Source of the DNA: Bugula neritina
Taxonomy: Eukaryota > Animalia > Bryozoa
NCBI GenBank assembly: GCA_964035545.1
Contig: OZ037766.1
Span: 15,118,722-15,182,721, forward strand
Reading direction: 5' to 3'
Length of the DNA: 64,000 nt
Below, piece by piece: positions 1 to 63,050 of this stretch (positions are counted from its first letter, which is position 1; every line of letters starts with the position of its first letter). A program made the position numbers and the translations under genes. The notes under the pieces are model-generated. The model was not told the origin of the DNA. It did not search any database and worked only from the letters and a program-made list of their open reading frames with translations.

Positions 1-3000
1 CAGGTTTTGTCTGACATCAATGAATGAGATGACGGCAGCCAGTGCAGGTACAAAAGCTCTCTCCAGAGCATCTTCTAAAGCATGCCTTGAAATACACAGG
101 AATAAAGAGTGAGACAAGAGAGCAATTTATGTAATTCATCAGATATCAACATAAGGGAACACAAAGAAACCTGTGGTTAGACATAAAAGCAACTATCAAC
201 TATATAATATCAATTTACAAACAGACAAACCTCAGTGTTTCTGATTGCTTCATGTTGCTAGCTTTTGCCGCATCCGACTTCACCCAGTGACCAGCATGGG
301 CCACGTACTGCTCCTGGTCCTCCAATAGCTTTTGAATGTGAGTGAGGAACACTAAGACAAACCCTGTAAGAAATGTGAAGGGGAGCTAAACACTGTGCTA
401 ATGTTGACCTACATACATTTCAGCTAAAATAGGTCTTAAAATTCAATACATGATTTTACTCGTATCTTAAAAGAAACTGTAAACTGCGCCACAACACTAC
501 AGTAGCTGCAAAGTAAAACTACTATACTCTATTAGACATATAGACAGCTGAGTAACTAGACAGGGGAGATGATCCAGTATTGTGATGGTCAACAAGTGAT
601 AGTCAGCAGGTAAAATATGACAGAGATGGCTGAAAAAAGAACATATAAAGGATGAAGCAGAGAAATTTAGCAGTGCAGCTCAGTTTATAATGATAAAATC
701 AAATGACATGCAGGTAGTTGATAATGCTAGCCTATTGGAAATAATATAGCCTACACTATACTAATGTAGTCTACACTATGCTAATGTAGTCTACACTATA
801 CTAATGTAGTCTACACTATGCTAATGTAGTCTACACTATGCTAATGTAGTCTACACTATGCTAATGTAGTCTACACTATGCTAATGTAGTCTACACTATG
901 CTAATGTAGTCTACACTATGCTAATGTAGTCTACACTATGCTAATGTAGTCTACACTATGCTAATGTAGTCTACACTATGCTAATGTAGTCTACACTATG
1001 CTAATGTAGTCTACACTATGCTAATGTAGTCTACACTATGCTAATGTAGTCTACACTATGCTAATGTAGTCTACACTATGCTCGTGTAGTCTACACTATG
1101 CTAATGTAGTCTACACTATGCTAATGTAGTCTACACTATGCTAATGTAGTCTACACTATGCTCGTGTAGTCTACACTATGCTAATGTAGTCTACACTATG
1201 CTAATGTAGTCTACACTATGCTAATGTAGTCTACACTATGCTAATGTAGTCTACACTATGCTAATGTAGTCTACACTATGCTAATGTAGTCTACACTATG
1301 CAGATGTAGGCTCAAAGTGAGATGGTCAGAATAGAGGAGAGTTTGACTTACGCTGATTAGTGTTGAGAAGGTCTCGCAGAGTACCGACTCTGTCGTATAT
1401 CTGTCCAGAGTTGATAACTGATACTGCAGCCGGCAGACATTGCATGATAAATTGGAGCGTGGATCCATTTGCTTCATCATTCTAAATAATTTTAATATTT
1501 GCTGATATTACAAAACAAAGAATTGTATGTGAATGTGTTTGTGAAGTGACCAGGAAAAGGTAAGGTACTATTGTACCTCACATAACAGTGCTACGTGCAG
1601 TGCTGTCTATAAGAGAATAGTATAGAGACTCAGCTATTGTATGTTGACAAGAAAATCTAAGAAAGGTCATCTGATAGGCACTGGGCATTTCTGTTGACCA
1701 ATAAAAATGTGGTCATTACCTCTGAGCTTTCTGATTGGTCAATCAATTGTTGTATAATTTGACTGGGTGTCAACTCCAAGCAGCTGTTAAGTGAAGGTAA
1801 CAGTATTTGTGGGGAGCGCGGGTCATCAATGTGCATACATTTCCACTTCCCACCTAAACCACAACAAAGCATTTTATTTCACTGCTTTACTTAGGAACAT
1901 TTTCTTACACACCAAACTGTCAAAGCACTGAAAATATTGACTTAGATCTAATTCATGTCTAAAATAATATTGAAATAAAAAGTATTACTTTTAATAAAAT
2001 AGGTCACAAATAACAGTTTATACAATATTCTTCTACAATAATTTATTATGTTGTGTACAAAGATATTTAATAAGAATATTAGGTAACACATGTATGCATA
2101 AAGTAATCTGCTAACACTAGAAGAAACAGCCTGTGTACCTTGATATCCAGTGAACTTGTGACCTCTGTGAAGGCTGAGTAGAAGCACGGTGAACGTGTTG
2201 ACACTTGCCCCGGAGCTTTCTCGCTGGATAATATATCGGACTGAGTCCAGCAGCTCAGTGTTTTCATCAGCCGCTTCACACTGAACTATGAGCAGTTTGG
2301 CTTTGGTGGAAGGCGTCGTGTAAAACCGTCTGCAAAATCACAACTAGAAGTTAGACATTGATGGGTTAGAATCAGCATTCACCTTTTAGCACTAATAATA
2401 AGCAATACAGTTTGCCACAGCTTCAGAGCAGTGGAGGTGAGAGAGAATAGCACGCTATTCACCAGCAGACAGGCACACTGCATCACTTCAGTTCGCATGT
2501 CATAAGTTTAGATACACAAACTGAATCAGATTAAATATAAAATATATCACAAATCCAAGAATTCATAAACATAGAAAATTAGAATCTATAAATGAGAAAC
2601 CTACCTGATATCTTCAGTAAATTGGTCTTCCTTCAAATAGTTTTTGAGAAAAACTCGGACTATATCTGTGGGGTGGCCGGAGAGGAGCAGGTTGTGACCC
2701 AGTCTCTCTTCATCCTCATCCACCATCAGCTCAGCGAATGAAGTCACCTGATTGCATGAGAGACAATTCGGATATGAAGGTTTGAGTCATGTTGCTATGA
2801 AATTTATTATCTTTTGAGTATTTTCCAACTTTAAGCCATTCAATAACAGTAAGTTTATAAAAACAACCAGGTTGTGTATAGCGAAATATTTGTTAAAATT
2901 AGGCATAATATATCGATTAATAAAACAGGCAGCTAAGTTATGGTTATGAAAAAAATTACACGTTAGCAACGGTTTGCTATAGAAGGTATTAACAGCTGTG

Positions 3001-6000
3001 ACAAACGAATTTTTGCAGCACTGAACTCCAAGTTAGAATTTGAAGAAAAGTAGATTCACATTTCTCAACACTCAGAGTGCTGACAACTCCAACTAACCTG
3101 TATGTAGACAGAACTATCAGATTCTGCTGACATGAGATGAGTGAGGTACTGCTGCAGCGTCTCATGGTATTGCTCAGTCATGTACATACTTTGTATCTTC
3201 TTAGCCTCAAATTCTAGCATCGTCTTGTCGAGACGTAGCACAGACTCTCCAGTAGCACATTGCAGTAGATGGAACTTGGCCTTTTCAAACACCTGAATAG
3301 TACGACCAACATAAACTAACAGTTGTTCAGCAAAATCAACATTCCGATTGAAAGAATGTGCTTGATGTTAATATTAATTTCACTTAGGAGCAATGGTAGA
3401 AAAATTTAGATAACCCAAGTTCTTCAACTTCTTTATTGAATTCTAGTTTGGATTGCAGGTTGAAATTCTCGCAAGAACATAACTCCTTTGCTACATTCTT
3501 AATCTAGAACACAGGCCTTTTGTAATTTCTCTATTATTGCACCTACCTCATTAATTTATTGTATAAACCTTGTTGAGACCTGTTAAAATTCAAAATATAA
3601 ACCCAAATAATTATAATATGAAGTACATGACAAGTTACCTGTTCCCAAAACTCCTCAACATCCCCGTCGACAGCCATGTCTTCCTCATCGCTAAGCTCGC
3701 TGTCGACAAGCATGCTCTGTTGTGTAAGGGGAGAGTCAGCAGTTCCCAGCCTACCACGACTCTTTATCTCATCTGTAGCCTGACGAATAGTCAGAGCTGT
3801 AGTTTCAGAGCTGTAGCCAATAAACGCCGTCTCTGTGGTTGACTTCTCAAAGTACTGCCTGTAAGGAACAACTTGGTCAGGTCTCATTCTACATACAGCA
3901 CTAATAGGACATAGTCTAAACTGAACCTTCACCTTCAATAAATAAGTACATCTGCACTTACTAACAGATAACTGCGAGATAAAAGTAGATACTGCTCAAG
4001 ACCCTAGCACTAAGTGAGTATAAAACAAGATCCATGGCCATAACCAGGCAGCAAAGCACTCCTAGAGAAGTTATACAAATGAAAGCTTACAATAACAAAA
4101 TGGAATTGCACAGCATACCTATTGATGAGAGCAGCTTTGTCAATATTCCACTCAAACTCGGGAGAGACGCGAGTTCGACAGGATGCGACAGGACACTCGC
4201 TAGCCATGTCTTGGCTAAACATCTTCTCCCGGCAGCATGGGCCGACGTAGTGCTGTAGACAGGGCAGCTTGTACGGCTGGTCCAGGGGCTCCCCACAGCC
4301 ATCACAGTCAAATGGGCACATGTTCATTCTATAATGTATAACGAATATATTACCTAATACAAATACAAAACCATCATATTGCATAGTACGTGTACTCAGG
4401 TTATAGCCAAGTGTAATCATAGCACATTCCATTTTAGCAAATATTTTTGGCTACAAACAAATACATAGCATTAGATGATTTAGTATTTCTTTAAAATAGT
4501 GTTATTATTTTTAAAATTCAAACTGTTTATAAGCTGGCAATTTATTTAAAGAAAAATACAACAGTATATTCACAAAATCGTGGCGTAGATTAGTGTATTT
4601 ACTGTAGTCTCCGCTGAGGAGTAACAAATTGATTCGCCCAATTCTCTATGCGCTCCTTCACAGTGTGCTGTTGTGTGTTGAGTAAGGAGGTGGCAGAGAT
4701 GTAGTGCTTCTCTAAACGGTTAATGAGAGGAATTGGGAACTGGGAATGTACTTTGTTCTTGTCGGCTATCACCACCAGTCTATTAGTAAATACCACAAAT
4801 GAACTCAAGTAAAGCAATTAAAATAATTGGCATGTTTAGTTGAATCTTTTATTATAATGCAACGATTAAACACATTTTAGAACCAAGTTTTTAAAAAGTG
4901 GTTTACTTGAAGACACATGAAGAAAATCTAAATTAAAATGGTATTTGAAGTATTTCGGCAGGATCTAAAAGAGTTTAAATTTAGACATTGCAGGTAGAAT
5001 AAAACCATAGCAAGTGCCCAGTTCGGCTACACTGTATATAAACATACATAACCGTTGTATATTCATTAAATACCAAAGTAATTATTTAAACTCAAAACTG
5101 GTAAGATGTAAAACTTTACCATGATACGTAGAAGTAAAGTCGATTATCTAAAACAGCACATGGTAACTTAAGTTAAAATTCAATAATCATTATGACTAAT
5201 TTCAGTTAAAATACTCACCTAAAGTTGTCATCAACGAAAGCTTTCACTCTGTGAGTACCAAGTCCAAGATCTACAAACTTTCTGTCACCCCAAGTAGAGA
5301 AGTACTGGTTGAGGGCGTCATATAGACTCTCGTACAGATCATCAAGATTGAGTAGGATCACAGGTTTACCCATGTCCATGCATGTCTTTATTCTGTAGAT
5401 GTTGTGACAAATCTGAAACACAAGGTTTATATTCAAATGCATGACTGAGCGAAAAACATAAACTTTTTAATGTCAAGAAAATAATTTCAGACATCAGTTG
5501 AAATGAAATATTCTGATAGAAGATGTTTCATTTCACATACGTATGAATTACCTGAGTATATGACAAGTCATCTCTAAACTTGCTGCCAAACACGACCTCT
5601 GGCTGCTGGTTGTGAGTTGAGAACTCATCCATTATGATACTGAGGACACTGAGATTCTCTGTCAGAATCAGCAGATATCTGCTCTCCAGGCTGAACATAT
5701 AGATTGTAGCAATTAGTACAAAAGTGAAGAGGTCAATATATTTGAATATGGAAGGGTGGACACACGAAATGTAATAAACAATCAGAAATATCTTTATATA
5801 TACCCATGTTGATATGCAGCACTTTAACCCTACATATTTTAAAATTGGCTCAAGACTGACCCTTTAAGAGCTGTATCTTCGCCAGAAAGACTCGACTTGA
5901 TGAGCCCCAAAGAATTGATAGGAGGCTTTCCATCCGGGCTGTCTGGTAATCTTTCCATAGAAGCACCGCAGTGTTGTCTGAATATGGTCATAGGGTCAAA

Positions 6001-9000
6001 CAGGTTAGAATCAAAACCTCCGAAATTCCTCTTAATGCTGTGTTCCAGCTGATTCTTGTTGAGTGGGCCGGCCTTGGTAGCAAAGCTGATCACCATCTTC
6101 ATCAAGCTGCACATGAACACCATAATACACAGCAATGACACATGTTGATACTATGCAACGAAAAGAGAGAATAAAACAACTAATAAGGCTGGCTTGAGAA
6201 CAAACCTGTAGAAATCTCGTAGGCCAAAGAACTCAGTTAGATCCCGAGCTAACGGCTTTTGGGCAGCACATATGTCAAGGTAGCCTCGAGCCAGCTGCGA
6301 GATGAAGTCACTTTGAACCACACCGAGTCTGGGTCTAATGACTGAGCCAGCAGCACTGGGTCGACAGATCTCTCTGTAAACAGCAGCAAACTAAATAACT
6401 CAGGATAAAAAAGCTGCTGGAGATATCGTTGCTATATTCACCATATATTTTATTTCATGCATAGAATATAGATATAGACACATGTACACATAGTATATAC
6501 GGACCAAAGTTTTTTCTTACTAAGTGAAATATTTTATGAAAGATCCTTTGGTCTTACAATCTAAAGAATTACCATAAACGTTTTTCCAAGTTGGTGAAAC
6601 AAAATTTGAAAAATTCAAATATTCAAGAGTGGTTATATCATGACTCTTTTTACAAATATCCAGTTGATTGCAGTTGCAATAAAAAACATAGATAATAATA
6701 CGATTCTCTTAATATTTAATTCCTATTTAAATCCAACTTATCTTATCTTAATCTATTTTTGTCCTCATCAAGCGTAGAGCTGGGGGTAACCTACTATAAT
6801 TTTACTTTTTTTTTTGAGGTCTTATTAATATTGCAAGATAATGAAAATTTAGATAATATAGAAAAAAGCGTTGCCAGCTATTGTCGCAACTAGATTGCCC
6901 TTACATATAAATGATTTCAATTGCATAGTATAAAAACATAAAAAGAACGTGTTGGGTGTGTTAGATATAAATTGTGTTGAAAAAACCACAAAGTAAGTAC
7001 TGCAGTACAAAATACAATCACAGAATTAATGGTTTATGATTTAATGTCAACCCAAGCAATTCAATCATTCACATGAGGTTGCTATGGCTTCCTTTAGCTA
7101 TAACTTGCAGATATAATATATTGCGTTTCAAAAGGGAATAGTAACAAACCCTGCAATATCCTGCAGCTCACGATCTTGAGGAGTTCCTCTCTGGACAAAT
7201 ATGCCACGGTTCATCTTGGCTGGATCCAGTGCCCAGTTAGAGATGCCAACAAAAGCACACTTCATGTATGGTTCTGGTGTAACACTACTGTCTTCACAAC
7301 CATCTTCTAGCAGAGGGTGTAGAGTCTATCAAAATATTAAGATTATTGTGAACAATGGCCAATATTTAATCTTGTTCTAAATGTTTGCCATCATTATGGA
7401 TAAGAATGAATAAGATATACCACCTAAATTATAATAGTATAGCCTACATATTTTACATAACATAAGCATTAATATTATATATATATCTATTATATGAACT
7501 AAAGTAGGACGAAAAATCATGTTACAAAATCTGGTTTACAAAATGCAAATGATTAGAAAAGTCAACATAGAAACTTATGTAAGGGCAATCAATAAAAATG
7601 GTGATCATCTCGCTTTCAAACGATGACATAACTTCATCACAGCCTACCTTAAGAGGCATGTTTTCAGAATCTTCAGCCAATCCGACTTCATCAAGTACCA
7701 CAACTGAGACGAATGTGTCTAGATCCTGCCCCTTCTGAAACTTGGCACAGTGTTTGAAGACTCCAGCTATTCCAGCTGGTGTAGCGTGTCTGCTGCACTG
7801 GAAGGCTGACATGTAAGACTAAAAAATACAATCAGTAAAATAAGTAAAATATCTAAAAAGAAGCCGCATAATACCCATATTCTGATAACTGTCAATACAA
7901 ATTTATGACCAGATTCAATTAAAGCATTATAAGAAACGATTTAAATATCACAATTTTACAGAAACAGAAAATATTATAGCACCACATATAAAAACCTCCA
8001 TCGAGAAAATTTAGTGTATAAGTACAACACAAAATATAAAACATACAGGGTTGGATGCATCTTACCCGTTTTAATCTTTTGAATAGATCATGCTTAGAAG
8101 ATGGTCCTTTCATTGCGTCCACAACCATAGCTTTGGACAGAGATTTAGAGCTGCCAGGTTTTCCAACCAGGAAAAGAGGAATTCTATTCTCAATGCAGAC
8201 AATCATCATGAAGACATTTTCTTTCAGAGCTTTGTTCTTGGCAATGTTCTTGTGTACGCTGTTGTCGACGACAGCATCGATGAACACATCCTGGCATCTG
8301 AAAACAGACTCCATAACCTTACTTATAGGACAGCACATGAATGAGTGATTTCATTGTAAAGTGCAGGCTATTGAAATCATACTTGGAAGTTCTTATAAAA
8401 TTTATAAATATAAGCTATTAGAAATAAGTGCCATTCACATTATTAGAGTGATATGCTGAACTCACTAATTGCTCTTAGGAAATAACAATAAAACACTCCC
8501 TCTAGTCACAAGCGATGACAAACTAAAACTTCACAGCTGAATGAGAAACTTCTACTGTCAAACCTATCACAGTCTGCTGCTTTCAGCAGTAAATAGTTAT
8601 GAACTAACATTTCAATCTCGTCCATCACGTATCGGGCGGGGTCCGGTGCTGCCCACCGAATCCCCATCATTTCCTGTATGGCTTCTCTGATCGCCTCAGC
8701 ATATCTCCTTCTAGTGTTCTCCTCCAGCCTAGCAAAGTAACAGACACCTAGGGCCAGCACCATGCTCCTTACCGCATAGTTCCTCTACAAGTATTTGATG
8801 GTCAGTAAAATAAAACATGAATACTTGAGAGTGTACTTGTCTACTCAAGTACACTGTTGTATATTTGAGTATACAACATACTTGCAAGAAGGTCAAATTT
8901 ATAGCTTGGTTTATTTATGTAGTTATACTTCTACGTAAATTAGCTAATATAACAATGAACTAATCACAACTAGCCAAGATGTTGAGTAAAGCATGGCTAA

Positions 9001-12000
9001 TGATTAAACTAACCATAGCAAGTAGAGAAATAATAAAGACCATAATAATTTATGCAAAAATTCAATACGTAAAATTTCCAAAATAAAATGAAACATTTTG
9101 ATATTAGCTCATAGCCGAAAGAGCAAACAACGCTATCTTTTTCATGTCACACCTTCATTTTCTCAAGCCTGTCTTCCCGCTCTTGTTGAGCAGCAAGTAG
9201 CTCTTCTTCGTCCAGGTCTCCCCCATCTGGGACTTCCATAGCCAGTCCAGTCGCACGCTTGTCATGCAAATCATCCATAGCAGCAAATAGATGATCCCGC
9301 TGACTGTAGAACCACCTTGACACCTCTAGCACTCTCTGTATGTCTCTCAGGCTCACAAAACTACATTCATCCTGCGTGAAATTCAACATCACTTGTCAAT
9401 ACTTCAAACGCCATAACTTGTATGTGTTATAGTAGACAATGCACTTCTATACGATGTAGGTACTGCAATTATACGTTGGCAGTACAAGTTGATCCTTCTG
9501 AATGATGAACACCTGTTAGATGAACAGAATTGGCTTGGTGCTGGATCTAAACAGTTATTAAAGTTATTAAACTAACTTTAGAGCAATACTTTCAATAAGA
9601 ATTTTTATATGAAATTAAAATTCCTATTTTGTATTGTTCGTAAGCAAAACATGTTGTGAGGTGTGTTTAAATTTTCGAAAATAAATATCAAGAGATGCAC
9701 GATTTTACCTTCTGCTGTCTCATGAAAGACTGGGTTATGTTGAGAACAATGGCTACTCTTGAGGTGAGGAAACCAAAATTTAGTCCGCCATTTTTTCTGC
9801 CATTACAGTTCTAGAACAATAGTTGATGTGTCTATTACATAATGATATATCAAATAGCTATATAGCATCATCATTGAATAGGTTTAAAAGGCATTATTCA
9901 ATCATATAATGTGTGCAATAAAGTTAGTTGTAATGTCAACATTTGGTAAAATATAAAAAGTGCATCATGCAAGCACAATACTCAGCTTACAAATTTCACA
10001 ATCATTCTTTGGATATAAATGAGTTCCACACTAGAACCAGGTCTGTGTTCCTCAACTGTCCGTATTGGGCCAGAGTCAAGAGTACCAAAGTCCCAGACCA
10101 GAGGAAGTAAACTCTGGGGAAGAGCCTGAACTCTGTACACCAGATGTCTCATCGGTATCTGACCTACAATACAGTTCAGTGAGAGTGAGGAATCAATCAT
10201 CCAACCCCACTAATGACTGACAGAAAACATCATGTGACAAATTTTAGATTGATATACCAAATTTGTCTTTTGTGTCCTCCTGGCTAACATTGTAACCCAG
10301 TCCAGCTCTCTTAAGCTTCTCAATCATATCAGGTGTGTGTCTAAGAGAGATAGTAAGAAATGTCAACAATATATTCAGATTATAACCTGAGAGATAGATG
10401 AGCACACAAACCCATACATAAGAAACCAGATAGGAACCATTATGTTTTAACATTATAACTGAATTCTCACATACTGGATGGGAAAGCCAAATAAGCTTAT
10501 GAAAAAATTAGGAACAACAGGTTGCAGGAAACATGTGAATGGGTAGGTCATAGAAAATGTGAATGAGTTGTATTTCCAAACAATAAAGCATACCTTCTGT
10601 AAGGGTTGCAAGCTGCTATGATCTTTAGTCCAGATGTTTTGTCTAGAGGTCTTCCTCTCATTCTACCATCACAGAGTATCTCTTTGACTAAACCAATAGC
10701 TTCTGTAGTGTTGGCCTCATCAAGGAACAATATTGTGTAGACAGAAGGTACCTGTAAAGTGTTAAACAATTTCTGTCATGCTCTTTGTAAAACTAGAGTA
10801 GTTTCATAACTTTACGAGTTTATATTACAAACATAGTTAGACAAATTGTGAGACCCATCATGAAGCACAAGACAAAAACCAGCCCAACTTTGCTTAGACT
10901 ATATTAGCTAATGATTGAAAACATATTTGTTATCAAGAAAAACCGCTTAACCAAAACACACATCAACTTACTCGCTCGGACTTAAAACTAGCAGCGTAAT
11001 CTTGGCAAATCTGCTGATTCTGAAGAGCCAGTTGCTGACCTTCTTCAACTTTCCTGATAATATCTTCTTCAGTTGTTCCACCATGAATCTGCAAAACATA
11101 AGCATACGTTTAGCAGTACCATTATAATACACCATAAAAGCCGAATCAATAACAGATAATAGTTGGATAAAAACAATCATGACACAAACCTTCACAATAA
11201 TCATGGTTTCAATTTCTTCCTTCAGAGCAGTTGGTACTTGTAACTTAGACATGAACTCTATAAGCTTAGTTTTACCACAACCAGTCTCTCCCATGATTAT
11301 CACAGGAATATCAACTCTGTGCGAGTATAGATAAAGAATAAATAAGAAAACTCCGTAATAACTGAATGATATCAACTTTGTAAGGATAAAAGCAAAACAT
11401 TATACTGTCACAAAGATATTTATTCATATACTCTGGAAACTACTTTGCCATAATATTTCAGATGTTCTGGTTAAGTAACATTTACTAAGAAAGATTGATG
11501 TCTAGCTAAAATCTTATCTCAGTATATGATGTATGACTAATATCTTAACTCAGTATCAGATGTATTACTAATATCTTATCTCAGTATCTGATGTATGACT
11601 AATATCTTATCTCAGTATCTAATGTATGACTAATATCTTATCTTAGTATATGATGTATGACTAATATTTTACCTCAATCTCTGATGTATGGCCAGTATTT
11701 TCTTAGCATTGTCCATTGTGAGTACATAATCAGAATCGGGGTCATCATCACCCCGAAAGAGTGGCTCCTCATTATACAAAGTTTTACTTCCTGGTCTCTC
11801 AATCGCGTGGAACATAGAGAAATTTACAGTAACAACATCCCGTAGCTTTTGTAACTGCTTGGTACTACAAAAAACATAAACACACTTTATATTCAGCATT
11901 ATTAAAATACATAAGTATGATTTCTTCATCAACACCAACTGTTGAAATTGTAAGAATTTCGACTTCTCTTACATTTATACCGATAAAATCAAGATATGCC

Positions 12001-36480: not shown

Positions 36481-38080
36481 ACAGTGCCAGTGGTCAAATG
36501 AAACTACAGTTTTACAAAGTAAAAGCTGAAGTACAGCTGCGCTCGGTTAGCCGACGCTTTTAGAAACATAGACGCCCCTTTTGTTTGAGTTACTGAAGCT
36601 TTGATTCATTTTTTCTCTTAGATTAAAAGTTCACTCATATAATATACCATATCTGATATAATTATGCTATAGTTATTATCGATTAGTTATCAGAAATAAA
36701 AATACTCTGACTACGACAGTTTTGCTTTAATATCAAAATATTTACAAATATTTTCATTGGAATTGAAGTTTTTGTTCATAGGTATTTCTAGCAGTATTTT
36801 ATGAATTTTCTCGCGTTCATGCGGGTATACAAGTTATCCCCATTCTCTTAATTAGAAAATTATTTGTAAAACCAGAGTTTGGGCTTGCTTAAACGTCATA
36901 CTGTGCTAAAAACAGCACCCAGTTGGAGGTGACTTGGTGCAACTTGAAAGTTGCACGAAGTCACCAAGATTGTCGGTGTGCACAACTCCAAAGTGAAAAA
37001 TTGTTTTCCATCGTATCAACAGCTAATATAAGCCTATATATGTAATTATAGCGAAGTGCCAACAGACACAAATGAGCATGTGGAACACATTGAATATATT
37101 GGTACTAACCTTTATCACCATGCAAGCCAAAATTCTGCCGACTTCAAATATGAGAGTAACTTTTTTCAATTTGGGGGAGGGTGAATTCGCAGTGAGTGAG
37201 CATTATTCAAAGGGGTAGCGGGTAGGTATTATGGACTTTTTAATTATTTGAGTAATGTAGATTTAATGTTCAAAATATTTTCTGGAAAGCACTTGTACAC
37301 TTATATTGCTGTTTTATGCAGCATACCAGCTGTTATAAAATTACTATGGAGATTCATCAAAAGCCAACGCTCAGAACATTTATGCTCTTTGCCATTAGGA
37401 GAGAAAAGAGAGACATATTCTTCCGTTAAAATATTATTCAAGGTTTCATCCCACTTGGGCGCTTTTTTATTTTGGCGCAATATATATAGTAATGTACATA
37501 TATAACTATTGCATTTACTGCTAAATATGAAATAAGCTACCAATGCCAGCTATTTGCTTTAACTCAATACTAATTTAGCTAGAGTTTATTTTATTGAGGT
37601 TTTTGGTTAGAACAGCATGTTAGACAAATAATTTTCAAGTAGCAATATTTTACATGGTTTTATGTGTTTATTTTAGTTTTTCAGTTTATAAAAAATGCTA
37701 TAAAAGGCTTTATGAAATATAAAAGTTTATCAATCAGTAATTAATAATTTATCATGGAACCAACAACAATCATCAAAAAGGGCCGAGGACTCAACCTTAT
37801 GCACAGAGGCTACAGGCATAAGAAAGATACCATTTGTGGACCAAAACAGCATTGGAGATGTGCGGAGGTTGGCTGCCCTGGCCGTGTGCACACAGAGTTG
37901 TAATATAGCAGTATGTGATATACCATGGAATGTATTTATGCCTTTTATTCTTTTATTAGTTTCTGGTAAAAATGGCAAAGGTAATAATAGAAAAGTTGGC
38001 TTGCTGATGGCTTTTTTGCTTTCTATTATGTGCTAAATAATATCATAAAATGCATATATTACACTAAAGTCTATAAACAT

Positions 38081-38308
38081 CGTCTAAGTGGGAGTCGTCT
38101 AAGTGGGAGTCGTCTAAGTGGGAGTCGTCTAAGTGGGAGTCGTCTAAGTGAGAGTCGTCTAAGTGGGAGTCGTCTAAGTGGGAGTCGTCTAAGTGGGAGT
38201 CGTCTAAGTGGGAGTCGTCTAAGTGGGAGTCGTCTAAGTGGGAGTCGTCTAAGTGGGAGTCGTCTAAGCGGGAGTCGTCTAAGCGGGAGTCGTCAAAGTG
38301 GGAGTCGT
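38081..38308. repeat. 15-bp minisatellite CGTCTAAGTGGGAGT, 15 copies
   Basis: Near-perfect array; it produces the spurious (SGSRL)n ORF. Confidence 0.97.
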
Positions 38309-41299
38309 TCTGTTAATGGTATACTGGATGGTTTCATTTTATTTATAAATAGTCACACTCTTAATATTCATGTTATTTATAGTAATCAGTTTGTGTTTGT
38401 AGATCTATACCATATATGCGTAGAGCCTTGGATGTGTAGAGCAATAAACTATATTAATCACTCTTCAAAATGCAAGCTTCTTTTGAGAATTATTGGCACC
38501 AACAATTACACATTGACTACAGTCAAGATATTGAGTAGAAATATTAAGAGAACTTCAGTATAACATATATCTGACACCAATTTGAATTTAATACAACACA
38601 AGTCATACAATAGATTCACAAACTTAGGACACTAATAATTATTACTAATACTCAGCAATAATCTGATGTTTCAGTGAAGCAGTTTAACGTAAAGTGTGCA
38701 GGATTAGTTTGAGAATATTTCAACAGTATAGAGTTATGTGTAGTGATAACAAATAATAAATATAGTAAACATTAGCCATGCTCATTTGAAACATCAATCA
38801 TGAACTAATCGAATTGGCTTGCAAACTGCAATATCCATCTATTCTGGCTCTCTATTGGCTATTGGTGAAACAGCGTGATAGTAGAATTTTGTTAATCTTA
38901 CAGTATAATCAGTATGTCTATTAGTAGTGGAAACTACAATAAAGGAAATAGATTTATTTATCAAAGAAGAAATGTATTATAATATGGCATCATGTTATAA
39001 AAGCAATCACCAGTGATCTAAAGCTATTATATAATCGCTAATAGCTATATATAGACAATGACAAAGTTTTGGCTAAAATTTTGCATTAAGAATCTATGTT
39101 AGAATTAGTTGACCTGAAAAAACCTCTACAATTACATCATTGCATTCAATACAATTCTTTGACGCATTATATTTTAGTAGATCTAGTGTTATTGTTTCAT
39201 ATAATAAAGATATGGTGTATGCACTACTCTTAATTAATAGAATCTAAGCCACGCCTAGGTTATAACTGTTAATAGTTGTGTTTTACATCTTGAAACAATT
39301 GCTGTTGAAACATTTTGCCTGTGTAACATCATTACATCTAACTGAAGCCATAATATGCTACATTCCATTCTAATTATTCAAACCATATTTATATTTTGTC
39401 ACTCATACTCGAGTACCTTACAACTCAGGTTACATCTTCGTACATAAGAACAACACCTATAGTACTCATGTGAATAAAGACCATCATAAACAAGTAACTC
39501 GGTGCAGTCATTACTGAGCAACACTCTTTCACATAAACAGTAACATCTTCTACATGCGTATGGATCCTACTGGATGTAGTACTCCACATTGCCTGCTCTA
39601 ACAGGTATGAGTTATAAAGGGTATCTTATTCTTTGATGCTGGAAACTTTATTGGAGCTGGAGATAAAATTTCAGTTTCCGCTAGAATCTCTGTATTATGT
39701 ATGGTTTCTGAGTTCTGCAGTTGGAGTATCTCATCACAGTATAAGTTTACTTCTTGCAATTTAATCTATCATATGCTTTTGGTAGTTCTTGCATTTGTAC
39801 ACAAATATACTTTTAAATATAACATAATTGATAATGTTGCAAGAACAATTTTTTGCTGGCATTGCAAACATATACAGATAGGTAAAACATTAAAAAGTAT
39901 TTTAATATGAACAAAAAGCAAAAACTCTAAAACACATGCCTTCACAAAATGGCATTAATAATACGATTCATATATGGGAATTGCTCCTTGGATAATAATA
40001 ATGTTTGAAAAGAAATTAGTGTGCCTCAACTACTTGCATATTTTATTTTAAGTACTTATTTATATACAGATTATTACAATAAGTGAGCAAAAATTTTGTA
40101 AAAATGGTCAACAATTAAGCATAACATAATGAAAGACACAATGATACATTAACTGCTTGTTTACTGAGTATACATGAAGCTACAATTATTTATTGTTGCT
40201 TCAACACGTAAACTTTTTATACTTTATAAGAAAACTATGGATTATATAAATACATGTACGTTGCTGCTTTTACTGAGCTATAGCTAAGCCTTCTGTTCTA
40301 TTCACTCTCCTGGCAGTGAAGATGTATTAGTAAGTTATAGTTCCTAATTATTACTAATAGTAACATTAAATTATGTCATAACTATTTGAACATCCATCAG
40401 CTCTTTACATGCACAACATAATATAGTGATATATTATTCATAATGATTTTACTTTTAGTTTAGCATTTTGCAATAACTCACCAGAAAAATATTTTGAATA
40501 TAAAACACTATTTTTCACAGTAAAAAGAGAGTACGTCCTTATAATTGTGTCACACTTGGAGATTTTTTCAAAGAGGTTTTCTGGTTTAAGAAGCAAGCTC
40601 TGTGTAGTCAAGGCAGAGTTCAAAGAAAAGATTGATCCTCATACAATATACAGGCACATTTCCTGCAAATTCGATAACATCAACATGTTGATAGCTCAAC
40701 TATGATTTGCTAAAACCTTTTACATGCTGAGTGTTATAATATATTACAGCATAATGCTACGTATCAAATATTTTTAAATAGCCTATGCAGTGCAATTGTG
40801 AAGTAGAAAATTAACAAAGAGAAAGATGTATTATAGAAAGCAGAGGTGCGTTCTACTCATAACAAGTTGCATTCTTGTGACATATATTAGCCTATACCAA
40901 ACAATGTTTCTGTTGTAAAAGCCAATGAAACTCATGTATGCAAAATGCTGATTTCACAAAAAACCACTGAAATTAAAACCAAATAAGTTCCAAAAATAAC
41001 AAATGGACATGGATGGAACGGATACCGGTGCGCTGGTGCTTGCTGGCATGAGAGGAAAAAAGACAGCTTTTCCAAAAGATGCTGAAAGCAGCATTATGCC
41101 AATAGAGAAAAAACTTGAACTTGAAAAAAGGCACTCTCATAGCACAATTTATTTGGTAAATTTGAAATAAATAAATTAAATTTTTTTTTAATAGCCATTC
41201 AAGAAACCAAGAATAAAGAGATCATGGTTTATAATGGTATAGAAACGTTTATTTTTTACGTTGAAAATATCTTTATTTTGCTAATCATGCATGAATTAA

Positions 41300-46349: not shown

Positions 46350-49300
46350 TATGTTATTCTTGTTATTAATAATAGTGAGTTTGTGCTTTTAGATTTATCC
46401 AAATTGAACCTTTAATATGTTGAGCAATAAACTATCTTAAACTCTTTGACTGGTCTCTGAATTTATAAAGCAAACATAGCATAAACATGGTGCCTTGAGT
46501 GAGGACTTGAAGAGACTAAAAGTAAAAGTGTTTGCTGGAAAGAGAGACAACAATCAATACAACTAAATCAACAACAAAAGTTCACAATATCATGATGAGT
46601 ATCAGTGTTGACTTTTTAGCCCCCAAGCCTATTCAAGATGGCTCTGACTTGTCCAACCAGTGGAAAAAATTCAAAAAAGAATTATTGAGCTATTTCTCAC
46701 AGCAGCTGAGAAAGCAAATTCTGATAATAAAGTCAAAGTAGCCATTATGTTAAGATGCATAGGCCCAAGAGGCAACGACATATTTAAAACATTCACTTTT
46801 TCAGATGGCAAATCAAAAGAAGTCTATGCTGATGTTGTAGAAAAGTTTGATGCTTTTTGTCAACAAGGCACTAATAAAGTAGTCAAAAGACATCAACTGT
46901 TATCAACCAAGCAGAATATTGATGAATATGTCATCTCACTTCACAAGATTGCTCGAGAGCGTCAACTGGACACGATGTATGATGATTTCCTAATACATGG
47001 CAAGTCCCTTAGCCAACATAACACTAGGTTGGAACAGGTCCTCACTAAACTTAAGCAGGTAGGTACAACACTCAACAAAGATAAATGTGTTGTAGGTAAA
47101 GAGCAGGTAGATTTCTTGGGTCATCGTTTGACAGCTCATGGCACACAACTGCAGCAAGATAAGCTGGAAGCAATTGAACACATGATGATTCCACAAAACA
47201 AGAAAGAGTTGGAGAGCTACTTAGGATTTGTAGCTTATTTGGCAAAGTTTGTTTAGAATCTTTCAGAGTTGACCGTTCCACTCAGACAAGTATGTAGAAA
47301 AGGTGTCCAGTTCCAGTGGGAAAAGCCACAAATGGAGGCTTTTGAAAATATCAAGAAATCTATACTGCAGTCACCTGTCTTGGCATACTTTGACCCTAGC
47401 AAGCTTATTACTCTTTCCTTTTATGCAAGTGCCCACAGTCTTAGAGCAGTGCTACTGCAGGATGGTAGACCTGTTGAATTTGCTGCCAAGTCATTGGCAG
47501 GATCTCAGCAAAACTATTCGCAAATAGAGAAGGAGCTTATGGCTATTGTATTTGCTTGCAAGAGATTCAAGTATTATATATGGTGCAGGGGCCCAGTCAA
47601 AGTTGAAACAGATCATAGAAGCTTGCTGGGTTTGTTTGAGAAGGCAATATGACTCCAAGACTTGTGAAGATGAGGCTGTAATTGCTGGAATATCTTATTG
47701 ACATGCATCTAACATTCAGACCAGGTAAAAAAAGTCTTGGCAGATACCTTGTCAAGACGCTGCCCATCAGAATCAACAGAAAATGTTTAGGTAGATGTAG
47801 ACCCTATGTTGCAGGTATGTTTTATAGTAATCCGCTCAGATGAGGTGATGGCTAAGTATCAAAAAGCCACAGAAGAAGATAAAAAGCTGTCAATGGTGAT
47901 TAAATCTGTTAGAAAAGGATGGCCTAATACTCGTAAAAGTTGTGCTGGTAGAGCGCTGGCTTACTGGAATATAAAAGATTCGCTCACGGTATAATGAAGG
48001 TTTAGTGTTCTATGGGTCTAGATTAGTAATACCCAGCATGCTGCGACAGGAGGTTCTAAGGGATCTACATTTGACTCATCAGGGAGTGAGTAAAACATTG
48101 CAAAAAGCTCAACACTCTGTGTTTTGGCCAGGTATTCGAAAAAGACTAGAAGAAAAATGCTTATCTTGCGAACCTTGTAAAGAGTTTGAGAAAACAGAAA
48201 GCAGGGAACCACTCATATCTTTTCCAATACCCCAATACCTGTTTCAAGTTGTAGGAGCTGACTTGTTTACTGTTGGGGGCACTGATTAACTCTTAGTAGT
48301 AGATTACCTGAGTAGGTTCCCAGTGGTGAAATGCCTTAAACAATCTATAGTAGCAGCTCAGGTGATAAGTAGTTTAGGTGAAGTGTTCTCTAATTTTGTA
48401 TGCTCTGAAGTCCTCATCTCTGATAATAGGCCACAGTTTTGCTGCAATGAGTTTACTAAGTACTGTCGGGAATGGGTAATACAACATCGTACAAGCTCAC
48501 CACTACATCCAGCAGGAAATGGCCAAGTAGAGCGCTGGGTAGGTACGGTAAAAGCTATTATTCAAAAGTGTAACGCAGAGGGTGAAGACTGGCAAAAGCT
48601 TTGTTGTCTTTGAGAAACACACCAGTGGATCAAAACATACCATCTCCATCAGAACCTCTGCAAGGTAGACTATTAAGGGACAGTATTCCGGTCATGTCAG
48701 CCAAATACCAAGTGAGTGGTTATGAGATTGAAGATGCAAGAGAGAAGTTAGGAGAAAGACAATCAAAACAGAAATTTTACTTTGACCGTAAGGGTGGCAC
48801 TGAAAAATCACTTCTAGACTTGGCCAAAACTGTCACTTCAAGACTGCAAAAGGTAAATGGATTACGGGTACAGTGACAGGTATAAGTGGTATTAGGTCAT
48901 ATGAAATTAATACTCCGGGTGGTAACACGTTTAGGCGCAATAGAGTTGACATTAGGCAAAATTTGGTAAGGAAACCAACTGGAGGTTCACCTATTCCTCA
49001 GGCTATAATGAGAACTCCGGAAGTTCAAGCCACTAGTACTGTAGGCACCGAGCTCGAGCCTGTAATAAGATCCGGTGAAACACAAACAGTCGTTGCAGGT
49101 AAAACGGAGGCATTCCCGGTCAGGGTGGAAAATGAGCGAACTACCGTAGTGGTAAGAGGGTGAGATTGCCTTCTCGATTTGCTGACTATGAAACATAAGC
49201 TCAGTGTCCACCAGACTTACTGGGTTAACTCAATAGTAGGTCATCAATTTATTCCTAGTTTAGTTTGTTGTTTTACTTGTGTGCAACATTTCTAATTTCG

Positions 49301-49450
49301 TACAATTCATTTGGAAAACAATCATTTCAGCCTTAGTAGTGAGCAGTACTACTGATTTAAAGCTGTAGCTAAAGCTGGTTTTATGTTTATCATAGATAGT
49401 TTGCTAGTTTTGTGGTTCATTTGCCTCTTTTTATTGGGAAAAAAGATGAT
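46350..49450 (+). mobile_element. Degenerate Gypsy/Ty3 LTR retrotransposon: LTR end, PBS, gag fused to partial RT, RNase H, integrase, PPT
   Basis: AATAAA...CA then PBS at 46488; gag WKKFKK/LRCIG; RT DDFLIHG...LNKDKC...VDFLGH; RNase H NYSQIEKELMAIVFAC and ETDHRSL; integrase HLTH...CLSCEPC, GADLF, SDN, NGQVER; purine tract GGGAAAAAGA near 49436. Multiple stops. Confidence 0.93.
46488..46505 (+). other. Primer-binding site of the Gypsy element, resembling elongator tRNA-Met
   Basis: TGGTGCCTTGAGTGAGGA directly follows the LTR-terminal CA. It matches TGGTGCCCCGTGTGAGGA (complement of the tRNA-Met 3' end, from recall) at 15/18. Confidence 0.6.
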
Positions 49451-51208
49451 GTCATAGATTTTTAGAGTATTCGAACTATGCCAGGCATGAATTTTCCCAT
49501 TGTTGTGATCTTTTGACTGAAATCTTAATTAAGCTGAAATATAACAAGAAACATTGAAAAATACTCTATAAACTGAAAAAAACATGCAAAAATCCAAACA
49601 CTATTACAAAATTATGCAGCCTAGCTATGCTTGTGCAAATAGTTTTTATCTTATACAAACTAAATATGTCCATGGCAAACAAAAGAATTGAATTACTGTA
49701 AACCACCTGCATTCAAATGAGTTTCTACTATGTAACCATAACACATGAAACTTTATAATATATAATATTGAAAAGTATAATTAATTAACTATATACCATT
49801 GCTTGATATTCATTGTATCTTTACGTTTTGTTACACTTGCTGTTTTTGAGTTACATAATGTAATGATTTAAGAATTTACCAATGTGCTTGATGAGAGCTG
49901 CAGAAGCATGAAAATATATTTATATATCCCAAATCATCAATTGACATCATTTGATGTCGTCTCCCATTTGGCTTCTGCACTACTTGGCTATACATTTTAT
50001 GATAAGCAACCAATAGAAACAACTATATCAAGAAGGAAAATAACAAACATGTTTAACCTTTGTGCAAAACATGTTCATTTTAGTTTTAATAACATCATTT
50101 ATACACAAACAGATGATGTAGTTATGGGGTTTTCTTTTGGACCAATAATTGGCAATATATTTATGACAAAACTGAAGCAAAAACTTATGCTAAGATGAAA
50201 TTAAATGTAGCCTTGGATAAAATACATGGGTGACACATTCACAACAATAGACACTCAACACCCCTGATTATTTTCATCCAAACATAAAATTTACACATGA
50301 ACTAAAAAACAATGAATTCTTTTCATTTCTGGATGCTGTAGTTTTTCAAGAACATGTTCACTGGAAACCCAGGTATCCCGTAAACAACTCATAATAATAC
50401 TTAGTGACAGTGGAACTATTTTCTTCTTAAAACCTTAAATTGAGCACACTAAAATCACTAGTGTTAAAAGCTCATAAGGTCTATTCTACTCAAACTCGCT
50501 ATAGAAAAAGATTGGTTGACTATACAACTCTCAAACAGTATTCAGATGATAGAGGAGATATATGCATATGTTCATACCATATAGGTAAAGTGTGTCATGG
50601 ATTTTTGAAAGAACCTTGAACTAAAATATATTTGCAGTGTCTTTAAATAAAAAGATAATAATTTAGAAAAACTCTCAAGTCTCAACAACATTACCAAGTA
50701 ACTCCTCAGTGAAAAAAACACACTAAAAAACATCTCTTAATTTAGTGAAACCGGATAAATGAACATTGCCATGTTATTAATTCAAAAATTTATCAACATA
50801 TCTCCACTACTAACCATGGAAGCCTTTCAATAGACAATGTAACAGTTCTGAATCAGTCATTTAAAGGAATCCCCAATCGAAAATTATAGCTGAAGCACTC
50901 TGCATTAAACAAATAAACCACAAGTTAATAAACAAAATTACTCCATACCACTAAAACTATGCCAATAAGTTTTACACTACTCAACTTTCACCAAGCCATG
51001 TTGTTTTTATATTCAGATATTTATATTTTGTCAACTCTAATTTATTTTTTATGCAAAGAAATCCGTATAATTTTTGACTCATGTAATATAAAAAACAAGG
51101 TTATCTCCCTCAGTTTAAATAATTTGAAATAACTGCCACTCTTTATACTTTGTGTCATGCATAGTGTTTAACATGACGTAATAATTTTTGAATTTTTATT
51201 TTTCATTG

Positions 51209-58746: not shown

Positions 58747-59476
58747 GAAATAAAATGAGATTTGATTAATATAATGGCATTTATTACTAGTAGTTTCTAC
58801 ACAAGAATGATGTGCACTCGTCAGATAAATTTGCCACTATGATTGCTTACAACTATAAATAATGTAATATGTAAATATACACAGAATAAAGCTAGAAGGT
58901 CAAAATATAACAAAGAGGTAGCATTGGAAGTGATTGGCTATGTTACAGCATTCTTGAGTAGAAATTTACTACTATGTCTGCATATGGATAAAAAGTCATT
59001 GCGCTTATTGAGGGAAGACAACTGTGGCTTATAAAGAATGAAATATTTTTCCCATGAGCATAACTGACAGTTTTTAGTGATGTTGTTATATGGTTGAGCT
59101 TTTCTGAGAATTTTCCAGGATATGGTAAAATCCAGACTTTTGTCTTTTAAGGTCCAGATGTGTTTGCTCAACTCAGTTTGCAAGTGCTTGGTTAGGTGTC
59201 TGAAGGAAGCAAGGTGGTTGTAGTATCTTGCCTTGAATGCAGTGGAGGAAATTCCTACATATGTTTCGACAGTATCGTTTGATGGGACGGATACTTTGGC
59301 CTGGTACACAATGTTTGGGGTGGTGCATTCTCCTGGAAGCGGGCAGGTCTCTACATTTCTACAGTTACAGCCTGCCTGTGATATAGGGGCGGTGTTGCAT
59401 TTAGTAACACTTTTGTTGTGAGCAGTGATGGTCTGCTCCAAATTTGGGCAGCAACTGTAGCTGAGTTTGAGTGTGT
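58742..59476 (-). mobile_element. 5'-truncated Hydra-type Penelope-like element with an intact GIY-YIG domain, flanked by (TA)n
   Basis: ORF 58938-59441: [24 protein letters not shown]...[16 protein letters not shown]...TELSKHIW...CQLCSWEK...LNKR; 3' hammerhead; (TA)n on both sides. Confidence 0.92.
58776..58835 (-). ncRNA. Intact type I hammerhead ribozyme
   Basis: Minus strand reads GGCAAATTTAT-CTGACGA-G-TGCACA[tcattct]TGTGTA-GAAA-CTACTAG-TA-ATAAATGCC. Full core and GUA cleavage triplet; predicted cut between 58785 and 58784. Confidence 0.88.
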
Positions 59477-59675
<199 letters not shown>

Positions 59676-59699
59676 TTAATCCAATACGCCCTAGGGCAT

Positions 59700-60165
59700 T
59701 AAATGGATATGCATATAGGTTTCATACTAAAATCATCAAACAGGCATAACAGGTTTAAATGGTACAGGGAGAGTAAAATGTTTGGCTACATTAGTGAATA
59801 TCTTGCCCTTCAAGTATAGGTTTCATTCTGTTGTAAAAAGAAAACTTAAATTGGTCTAGACCAAAATGTGGGTCGAGTGTTCCCCGACGTGTTAAATATG
59901 AAGTAATAAAAGAAATATAATCAGTAAGCTGTACTTCATATAAACCAAACTCAATTTTTTTTAGAAAGTTCAAATCTAGGTGTTGTCTTCTATCTTTGAT
60001 TTGTTCTATATTGTTTTTTATCATGCACTCTGAAACACTCTCCACAGGACCGAGTCTGTACGCCCACTTAACAGCCCGTCTCTGAACTGTTTCCACCTTG
60101 TCTATTAATGTTTTAATGTAGGGTGACCATACCTGACTAGCATACTCAAGAATTGGCATCTTTAT
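59700..60165 (-). mobile_element. 5'-truncated LINE (CR1/L2-group) RT C-terminus
   Basis: PILEYASQVWSPY...VETVQRRAVKW...FKFSFYNR. Confidence 0.88.
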
Positions 60166-60250
60166 TAAATTTTTAATGTATCAGATTGATAGAAGTTAGT
60201 TTTTTTGTTTGTTTATTGCTTATTTGTATAAAATGGAAAAGAACTCTAAC

Positions 60251-62840
60251 ATCTTGATCTTGATCTTGATTGGGTTAAGTCCCAAGACCTCTCGGAGAGA
60301 GTAATTGTGGAACCCTCAGATTTATCCAGGCTCAAAAATCCGCTACTATCTCTTCCGTACGGAGCTCCCGGACAGTGCGCAACAGGAAACCCTGCAGGTA
60401 CAGGCTCGAATCGCAGGCTATAGCACTGAAAGTGTTGATACGGGTATTCATGTTATGGGTTGAGGATTTCATAAATTTAAGTGTGTTTTTTACGGTTGGA
60501 AATAAATCATTATTAGCAGCAATACGACACAACAAAGAAATTCTCTGTGACTGTCTGCGCTTTCTTAATGTCTCTAGTTCTAGGTCAAATTTGGCATCTG
60601 TTACCGATACTTCTCTACCCTTTAAATTTTTAATGAACTGTACAGCCCTATTTTGGGTAACTTCTAATTTTGTTATTAGATGTTTATTGCATAGGTCCCA
60701 TACTTCAGCAGCATATTCTAGGAGAGGTCTACAAAGAGTTTTATACGCAAGAATTATAACATTTTCTGGGGCATTTCCTAGTGTGAGCTTGATTAAACCT
60801 AATACTCCGTATGCCTTTGATATGATATTTTCGACATGCTTATTCCATTTCAAATCTGCTGATAGCAATATTCCAAGGTATTTTACAACTCCAACTCTAT
60901 TCAGGGGATCTTCTCCTAATTTATAAGTAAAGACATTTTCCATATTTTTTGTTTTCTTACCAAAAGTGATGACATTACTTTTCTTTGAGTTGAACTTCAT
61001 ATTGTTTTCTTTTGTCCACCTATAAAGTCTAGAAAAATCTCCCTGTAGTTTATGATGATCATTTGAATCAGTAATGGGCAGATAAACAAGAGTGTCATCA
61101 GCAAAAAGCCTGATTGTACTATGTTTAACGCAGTTTACAATGTCATTAATAAACAAAACAAATAATGTTGGACCCAGCACACTTCCTTGTGGAACCCCAG
61201 AAGTCACTGGTGCTAAGTCCGAAGATACCCCGTCAATGACCACTCGTTGTGAGCATCCAGTTAAGAATGATGAAACCCATCGAATAATACAGGGATTTAT
61301 TTTTAACAATATCAATTTCTTTACAAGAATATGATGGTCAATTACATCAAAGGCTTTAAAAAAATCTAGCACAACTGCATCTACAAAATGTCCTTTATCT
61401 ATATGTCTTGATATATCGTGGTTGACAGTAGCAAGCTGAGTAACACATGAAAATTTGCGGCAAAAACTATGTTGGTTTTATGTATAAATTTTTCAATTGT
61501 GTGTTTAAATGATGCAGAACTACATGTTTAAGAATTTTACAACAAATTCACGTTAGTGATACTGGTCGATAGTTGGAAGCTAGAGTGCGGTTACCCTGTT
61601 TAAACACAGGTGTTACATTTGCAGTCTTCCAGTCATCCGCCACTATTCCTGTATTGAGTGAATGATTGAAAATACACACCAGTATTTCTGCTGTTCAATC
61701 AATGTTCACTGCGAGATAGTTCTTTGTAAATCCATCTACTCCAGGAGCTTTACCTTGTACAAGTTGTCTCAGCAGGTTCACAACTCCTTCTTTAGTTACC
61801 ACTATATTATCTTTCTCAGTGACTGATAGTGATTCTGGTAGAGGTGATGAAGTGGTTAATACACTGTAAAAGAAACCATTCAGAGTGTTAGATATCTTAG
61901 TTTTATCATACGTCAAGATACCATCATTGTTTTCTATGGAAGTAATCTCATTATCAGTCCCTTTTAGATCTTTAACATATTTGTTTAACAGTTTTGTGTA
62001 GCCACTGAAAAAAGGTTAGTATAGACGATTCACAAGCAAAGATGCTTTCAGTTTTCTAAATAATTTTTTATTATGGCGAGGTAATTCTTTATATTTAGCC
62101 AAGTGATCAGCATCACCAAATTTTTGAAAGCGGTTGTAAAACTTTCGCTGTTTCTTACATGCCTGTTTGGCTTCATGATTAAACTAGAGAGGCTCATGTA
62201 GATTTCTAGACTTGCGTTGTTTAGTTGGGACATATGAATTAACAGGTCTATGTAATTCAGTCTTAAATGTATTCTATATAACATTATTATCATATTTCAA
62301 CATTACTTTGTTTTTAATAGTATAAAGCAACTCATCTAGACCAGTTGTAAACCCGCTGAGTTCGATTTTGTAAAATAGCTTGATTGGGGGGGGGGGGGAT
62401 AGATGGTTTCTTCTTCTGTTCAACTTCACCAGTCAAGACCGTTTCTCTCATGAAATGGTCGCTAATACCCCGTGTTATTACATTTGTGCTTTGAACTTTG
62501 TATGACAAGTCAGTACAGATGAGATCTAATATATTGCCTGCTATGTGCGTAGATTTATGAACAAGTTGTTTCAAATGATTATCATTTAGAAAATTACAAA
62601 AGTCAGTATAGTATGTCCTCCAACAAATTGAAAGACCAGTATCTTCCCAATAGAGGGGTTTCAGACATCCCTCCAGAGGAATTTGTATTTTAAAGTTGTC
62701 TCCCCCTACAGGTATTAGGGGCAGTCTCAATGATATATAGAAGGCCCATAAAATAAGTAGAGATATATGGTTTGAGTGAAGACTACTACTAGTATAAGTT
62801 TCATTTTTTCTGAGATTATTATTTTGGCATAGGTACACAT
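60251..62840 (-). mobile_element. LINE (CR1/L2-group) ORF2: decayed endonuclease plus largely intact RT; 3' tail (ATCAAG)n
   Basis: GNILDLI, ISDHF, KAPGVDG, NYRPVSLT, LDFFKAFD, SGVPQGSVLGPTLF, LFADD, KYLG and RPLLEYAAEVWD; tandem ATCTTG at 60251-60270 marks the 3' end. Confidence 0.93.
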
Positions 62841-63050
62841 ATGAGCAGTTTCAGAATTTTTAAAAAAAAATTTGTTAATGATAAATGGCACAGAAAGAAA
62901 ACTTCAAAGCATATTTGTGGTTTTGGTTATTGAGCAAATCTGAAGCTGGCAGCTGTCATTATTATTTGCTTTGCTGACTGTAACCAGTCTGGTTAGAGCT
63001 GCTAACCTTTCAACTCTTAGAACAATAATAACATGCTCGTAAACTATCAC

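Follow-up and report, generated by a model that had tools for sequence, protein, structure and literature searches.

How did a short cysteine- and histidine-rich exon come to lie in the part of an RNF213-like gene of the bryozoan Bugula neritina that encodes the ATPase ring, and what is the finger that it encodes? RNF213 (mysterin) is of major importance in human disease (moyamoya) and acts in cell-autonomous immunity as a ubiquitin ligase, in which ubiquitin transfer runs through the RZ finger, the RING being dispensable in vitro. The gene considered here occupies the minus strand of the window, that is, the 64,000-nucleotide stretch of DNA that was analysed (contig C2:15118722-15182721), from about position 33,000 down past the left end of the window; the entire 216-Mb assembly was searched for its relatives. 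A first-pass annotation of the window, made from the letters alone, described a RING-finger cassette exon right after the AAA core of an RNF213-like protein. The key observations on the exon, its product and its relatives are described below.

The finger exon (4119..4328, minus strand) has the properties originally attributed to it: 210 nt in length, phase 2 at both ends, AG/GT borders, no stops and the quoted flanking peptides. In the minus-strand reading, the acceptor AG occupies 4330-4329 and the donor GT 4118-4117; the 5' base of the exon completes a codon split with the upstream exon (..CA|A), so that the upstream peptide ends in ..RRL followed by Q, and the last two bases (AG) form another split codon with the first base of the downstream exon, the G at 3858. 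Between these lie 69 whole codons (4121-4327), which are stop-free and encode a putative RING-derived zinc finger with the pattern C-x3-C-x2-C-x11-C-x2-H-x4-CC-x12-C-x4-C, which includes an extra Cys four residues upstream of the series first described, and a conserved tail (..F/Y-E-W-x-I/V-D..AL.N). The codons of the conserved Cys and His residues (C4, C8, C11, C23, H26, C31, C32, C45 and C50 of the exon peptide) span 4178..4318 of the minus strand. Two minus-strand phase-2 introns with GT..AG borders, one of 274 nt upstream (4329..4602) and one of 260 nt downstream (3859..4118), are each defined by the sequence and by a joint in RNA contigs. The upstream exon (4603..4779; 177 nt, phase 2-2), where RNA contigs end or join, encodes the ..PLINRLEKH..WA..F stretch of AAA5, and the downstream exon (3637..3858; 222 nt), represented by the RNA contig piece 3637-3857, starts with QYFEK..FIGY. 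These are followed, on the same strand and in the same transcript, by an exon at 3096..3290 (195 nt; an open frame and RNA contig pieces from four runs) and another at 2605..2745 (141 nt seen; RNA contig pieces). The lengths of all five consecutive exons in 2605-4779 are multiples of three and the introns between them are in phase 2, so that the gain or loss of an exon in this region is frame-neutral; accordingly, the reading frame survives skipping of the finger exon.

The RNA evidence consists of assembled contigs from four public runs belonging to four studies, aligned to positions 2500-6500; an RNA-Seq library is on record for one of these runs, and the other three are classed as RNA by software guess. 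Each run yields one contig of ~1.5 kb that joins 2605-2745, 3096-3290, 3637-3857, 4118-4328 and 4606-4752 or further, and the skipped parts are bounded by CT..AC as read on the plus strand, hence by GT..AG in the direction of the gene. Both joints of the finger exon, 4328>4606 and 3857/8>4118/9, are present in all four runs, the three letters left between 4328>4606 and the annotated junction 4603>4328 reflecting a single synonymous difference at 4605. Because these intron-less contigs connect the finger exon to both of its neighbours, the exon is spliced into mRNA as predicted, through the junctions 4603>4328 and 4119>3858 that the first-pass annotation had singled out for verification. The skip joint 4603>3858 is absent from the contigs of the four runs, with the proviso that assembled contigs drop rare isoforms. 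Thus, the contigs show the included form only, the proposal of a cassette switched by splicing finds no support in them, and the finger exon is always included as far as the data show. The RNA contigs differ from the window at 2-9% of positions and so come from another strain or a cryptic species. A contig of run X6 has a loose end at 3862 which translates as the tail of a paralog's finger, indicating that at least one paralog also expresses its own copy.

The assignment of the gene to the RNF213 family, made at the outset, is supported by matches of individually searched exons and homologous stretches to mouse and human RNF213 chains that reach E 2e-23, and a dynein-like AAA core is recognizable in the product. 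The exons in 7919..11375 (minus strand; open frames 10968..11375 and 7919..8338) encode two Walker A loops, G-E-T-G-C-G-K-T and G-K-P-G-S-S-K-S, which we take to belong to the AAA3 and AAA4 modules of RNF213. The upstream exon matches the mouse and human chains at E 1.6e-10 (6tax residues 2584-2635; 7oik residues 3107-3158), and the homologous stretch of P0022 that covers the downstream exon aligns to mouse RNF213. Upstream of the gene, the window contains broken retroelement frames, identified by eye, at 46660-50198 (plus strand), 58938-61372 (minus) and 62332-63239 (minus); the plus-strand run includes reverse transcriptase- and integrase-like pieces, and the minus strand carries an RT-like frame of 346 amino acids, also found by eye. 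Simple tandem repeats, made of RLSGS units and TA-rich IYIY units, give rise to long artificial frames at 38030-38563 and 59418-59749, both on the plus strand.

In the domain map of mouse RNF213, the AAA core extends over residues 1775-3405, with IR5 of AAA5L at 3063-3103, and is followed by the hinge (3406-3588) and the RING (3940-3999) (PMC7311170). The alignment of the upstream exon with 7oik, a full-length mouse RNF213, puts the insertion on this map: even if the chain numbering is shifted by a tag of up to 13 residues, the finger interrupts AAA5, with IR5 some 45-55 residues before it and the end of the core about 250 residues after it. The initial placement right after the AAA core was therefore wrong. 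The WA..F helix and the FIGY motif, on either side of the insertion, were said to be contiguous in human RNF213; in the mouse protein, they are ~20 residues apart with no Cys between them, in agreement with that statement. IR5 lies at the AAA4/AAA5 interface and, in the resting state, blocks the nucleotide site of AAA4. A module in its vicinity could couple to the ATP state.

Standard domain models barely detect the finger. For the window's copy, Pfam reports no match at E up to 10; among the 28 fingers of our alignment A1, at most 9 match a RING model, all below threshold (best E 0.0006-0.06), and the finger falls short of the gathering score of the curated RING profile. Comparison of profiles yields a clear signal: hhalign of A1 against A2, an alignment of the nine canonical RINGs of the paralogs that itself matches solved RINGs including that of human RNF213, gives 98.2% probability and E 3.8e-14 over 55 columns. 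The A1 profile scores 28-44 bits against 8 of the 9 canonical RNF213 RINGs and 17.0 bits against the ninth (L021); two unrelated RINGs from this assembly reach 7-13 bits, and no solved RING in the PDB exceeds 20.7 bits. In a pairwise BLASTP comparison, the finger resembles the canonical RING of the same gene modestly (E 3e-5 over 34 residues). Judged by these profiles, the similarity of the finger is specifically to the RINGs of RNF213, the kinship proposed in the first-pass annotation.

Structure prediction points in the same direction. AlphaFold2, supplied with A1, produces a model with pLDDT 79 in which short strands are accompanied by a helix (residues 30-37) that follows the CC pair. A Foldseek search with this model returns RING domains in all of the top 50 places (TM 0.5-0.67), and the top VIA-align matches, which reach Z 7.0, are likewise all to RING or U-box domains; against the human RNF213 RING, VIA-align gives Z 5.9 and an rmsd of 2.4 over 54 residues with 28% identity. 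The language-model neighbours of the finger belong to zf-C3HC4 clusters. The predicted fold is thus RING-like, with the cross-brace beta-beta-alpha arrangement present in the model.

The ligand pattern is unusual. Residues P18, C23, H26, C32 and C45 are invariant in A1, and C11, Y19, G29, C31 and C50 are conserved in at least 90% of the members. The finger departs from the eight-ligand spacing of RING-HC domains in that H-x4-CC replaces H-x2-C-x2-C, and the A1/A2 alignment places Gly29 at ligand 5 and C32 at ligand 6, in accord with the early observation of a Gly ligand with an adjacent CC pair. Eight candidate ligands are kept (C8, C11, C23, H26, C31, C32, C45 and C50); the spacing of the last Cys pair varies between C-x4-C, found in the window, and C-x2-C, found in some of the homologs, and the Pro after ligand 7 is retained (C-P-V). 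In RING domains, the E2 is normally contacted by a hydrophobic residue between ligands 1 and 2. The finger consensus at this site is C-x-G-C, the window reading C-D-G-C, and in most members Gly thus stands in place of the hydrophobic contact. A complex prediction for the finger with two zinc ions and a UBE2D-like E2 (L028:1489-1929, contig C213, of uncertain origin) scored 0.05, a value that speaks neither for nor against E2 binding. Among the E2 (UQ_con) matches in the assembly, some are full-length and contain several in-frame TAA or TAG codons and no TGA (small contigs C95, C39, C272, C278, C118, C69, C21, C51, C173 and C252); the assembly would thus seem to include DNA from an epibiont or contaminant that uses a ciliate-type genetic code.

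The first-pass annotation left open whether the protein has two RINGs or one that had moved, and proposed extending the contig leftward for the canonical RING and RZ finger. The canonical RING is there, together with a candidate for the RZ finger. The open frame of the canonical RING (C2:15113863-15114075, minus strand), with the pattern C-x2-C-x11-C-x-H-x2-C-x2-C-x6-C-x4-C, lies about 4.6-4.9 kb left of the window start and 8.8 kb downstream of the finger; its exon is 177 nt long, of symmetric phase 2-2, and starts one codon before C-P. An RZ-like stretch, C..C-x2-C..GG-x-G-H, was located by eye ~8.1-8.3 kb left of the window start, 12.3 kb downstream of the finger. With the canonical RING and the RZ-like finger retained in the same gene, the protein has two RINGs, and the notion of a relocated RING can be abandoned.

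The PLINRLEKH exon is present in nine copies in the assembly, corresponding to nine RNF213-like paralogs, and eight of these have the finger exon at the equivalent position, with unchanged phase. The seven copies outside the window, 39-56% identical and without stops, are distributed over three contigs (four nearby on C2, one further along C2, one on C3 and one on contig C4). In six of the seven, the surrounding 3-kb locus contains the PLINRLEKH exon, the finger exon and the FIGY exon in this order, with AG/GT borders and the same phases. The ninth paralog, at C2:26.10 Mb, is without the finger: one exon ends in ..CA|gt and the next starts with ag|G.., giving the reading ..WAARFNSNQ-SKSSEIEKIFIGY, so that a single phase-2 intron occupies the site of finger insertion.

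The finger exon is under purifying selection: its dN/dS, a check proposed with the original annotation, is 0.06-0.21 in the unsaturated paralog pairs. When the window's copy is compared with the others, dS is about 2 or saturated, which makes this copy old. Given the spliced contigs, the open paralog copies and the low dN/dS, the finger exon is a genuine coding exon, more than a chance open frame.

The genomic arrangement of the paralogs shows several further features. RNF213-like loci map to C2:15.07-15.44 Mb, C2:26.1 and 26.9 Mb, C3:24.2 Mb and C4:18.8 Mb. Five of the nine paralogs are clustered on C2 in mixed orientation, and the left neighbour, on the plus strand, converges on the gene of the window. 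The fingers of paralogs L003 and L004 are near-identical, and their dS of 0.10 identifies a recent duplicate pair. A tandem repeat array of ~1.8 kb (..HNT-x-SH-x-CI..; C2:26103712-26105542) is located within the ninth paralog, apparently in an intron.

A single-sequence search of 1.84 billion representative proteins returned 22 matches with 35-65% identity, nearly all of them exon-sized fragments from metagenome or run assemblies, and no long protein of any kind. The one named match is a 613-residue 'rnf213-alpha-like' model from the bryozoan Watersipora subatra that starts inside the finger, and at its locus (OY755163.1:20917290-20953693), the upstream, finger and FIGY exons follow in the same order. 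With a second Watersipora model, P0033 (910 residues; INRLEKH at 753, finger at 802, FIGY at 875), at least two RNF213-like genes of this species carry the finger exon at the same site; an ENA metagenome contig (L027) shows the same order of the three exons. Pfam finds no domain at the finger in the Watersipora predicted proteins. The NCBI models split one Watersipora RNF213-like gene in two near the finger exon, with one model ending upstream at 4383 and the next starting at a Met inside the finger, which leaves the finger truncated in the 613-residue model. Mouse and human RNF213 contain no finger and have about 20 Cys-free residues at the insertion site; the RNF213 fragments P0034 and P0035 also lack it, and region searches with the Watersipora proteins recovered Watersipora and two finger-less RNF213 fragments only. 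The named holders of the finger are all bryozoan, and the finger is likely absent from other phyla, as far as a search that returned no long proteins can tell. With eight paralogs, Watersipora and one ENA contig carrying the finger, the insertion is not the one-off event in a single gene that it first seemed to be, but a long-standing trait of an entire subfamily.

Exon duplication appears to be the most likely origin of the finger. The family's own RING exon would have been duplicated, yielding a finger of ~55 residues with the RING fold; the copy would have landed in a pre-existing phase-2 intron within AAA5, and the canonical RING and RZ-like finger would have been kept alongside it. This scenario is suggested by the RING profile kinship, the common phase 2-2 and the unoccupied phase-2 intron of the ninth paralog. 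The two exons, finger and canonical RING, further resemble each other in beginning one to three codons before a common C-P-x2-C-x2-C start, in the L-x2-P-x2-L-P-C stretch, in a last Cys pair spaced by x2 or x4, and in the I/V-P-x2-Y/F tail; the direction of the change, gain as opposed to loss, rests on parsimony and on the search without long proteins. All things considered, we regard it as probable that the exon is an always-included part of a lineage-specific RNF213 subfamily, namely, a duplicate of the RING exon in a phase-2 intron of AAA5, and that the product is a two-RING protein.

Other readings of the exon have to be weighed against this one. The finger might be an ancestral domain that early metazoan RNF213 already possessed and that vertebrates, the ninth paralog and other lineages have since lost. 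The age of the copies, with dS saturated between the window's copy and most paralogs, would fit such a history, as would the existence of 22 homologs with identities down to 35%; however, mouse and human RNF213, P0034, P0035 and the ninth paralog all lack the finger, its named holders are only bryozoan, and its nearest relatives are the lineage's own canonical RINGs, with which it has in common the C-P-x2-C start, the tail that follows the last Cys and the variability of the last pair, so that we consider ancient presence followed by repeated loss unlikely. The probability appears lower still for a regulated cassette, whereby alternative splicing would switch between a one-RING, vertebrate-like protein and a two-RING protein. 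The exon can be skipped without loss of frame, and a protein made without it would look like the ninth paralog and mouse RNF213, but the symmetry is not special to this exon given that all five consecutive exons are multiples of three, and the four runs contain only the included form, a weak counterargument in view of the loss of rare isoforms from contigs. The possibility of a pseudo-exon, or a chance open frame in an intron, is close to nil: although Pfam recognizes nothing in the window's copy, this reading is refuted by the splicing of the exon into transcripts in four runs, its conservation in eight paralog loci and in other species, and dN/dS values well under 1.

Under the preferred reading, that of a duplicated RING exon, the role of the finger can be addressed in conditional terms. 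The finger would bind two zinc ions, with a rewired first site formed by C8, C11, C32 and either C31 or C4, as can be surmised from the Gly at ligand 5 and the conservation of the CC pair and the upstream Cys. Mouse RNF213 from which the canonical RING has been deleted still auto-ubiquitinates, so that ubiquitin transfer can do without this RING (PMC7311170). Given this dispensability and the Gly at the E2 contact, the finger would more probably be an extra docking surface on the motor ring, or have a regulatory role, than a classical RING that activates E2~Ub; classical E2 activation by the finger is doubtful on the basis of its residues. It is conceivable, although we do not favour it, that the finger is a competent second E2-recruiting RING which would dock a charged E2 beside the ATPase ring and add ligase activity. 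The predicted RING fold, the eight or nine conserved Cys and His residues, the conserved Pro after ligand 7 and the central helix after the CC pair are all compatible with recruitment, but the E2-contact position is Gly in most members, ligand 5 is Gly as well, and RING models score the finger below threshold. A far more speculative idea, which we deem very unlikely, is that the finger represents a new functional site on the motor ring, for example, one in which the invariant surplus cysteine of the CC pair would be a reactive or relay residue whose action is coupled to the ATPase cycle; the analogy is with the zinc-finger active site that RNF213 already has.

The implications of this arrangement extend beyond the locus. 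The subfamily appears to have duplicated its RING, putatively rewired one zinc site and set the copy on AAA5 next to a nucleotide-gating element; the finger has been kept under purifying selection and multiplied to eight genes. Here is a natural experiment on the function of the RNF213 RING and on the communication between the ATPase ring and the ligase modules. It is also a clear instance of intragenic exon shuffling, in which the donor exon, the recipient intron and an unmodified paralog coexist in one genome. Our search of the literature found no description of a second RING in RNF213 or of invertebrate RNF213 RINGs. What is new is an RNF213 subfamily with an internal, apparently RING-derived finger in the ATPase ring, for which we found no paper describing such an arrangement; the finger itself is already in databases, inside NCBI-predicted Watersipora proteins.

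Among known systems, the closest by far is RNF213/mysterin of mouse and human (PDB 6tax, 7oik, 8s24). The giant architecture is the same, with two Walker A modules in the window, an AAA5 stretch that matches at E 1e-10, downstream regions that align over about 500 residues, and a canonical RING downstream, followed in the bryozoan gene by the RZ-like stretch. The differences are that vertebrate RNF213 has ~20 Cys-free residues where the bryozoan subfamily has the finger of ~55 residues, and that this genome encodes nine paralogs, with a cluster of five on a single contig. Compared with the canonical RNF213 RING (human residues 3992-4045, PDB 9jta), the finger is alike in exon phase, in the C-P-x2-C start and in the tail after the last Cys; in contrast, it has Gly as ligand 5 with the CC pair one residue on, C-x2-H in place of C-x-H, and Gly in place of the hydrophobic E2 contact, and it resides in AAA5, whereas the canonical RING belongs to the E3 module. 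The RING-HC and U-box domains of other E3s (TRAF6, UHRF1, TRIM25, RNF146, RNF168 and CHIP) provide the best structural matches to the predicted model (TM 0.6-0.67, Z 5.4-7.0, 54-67 residues), whereas at the profile level the finger matches these generic domains weakly (E 0.004 or worse) and does not reach Pfam gathering scores.
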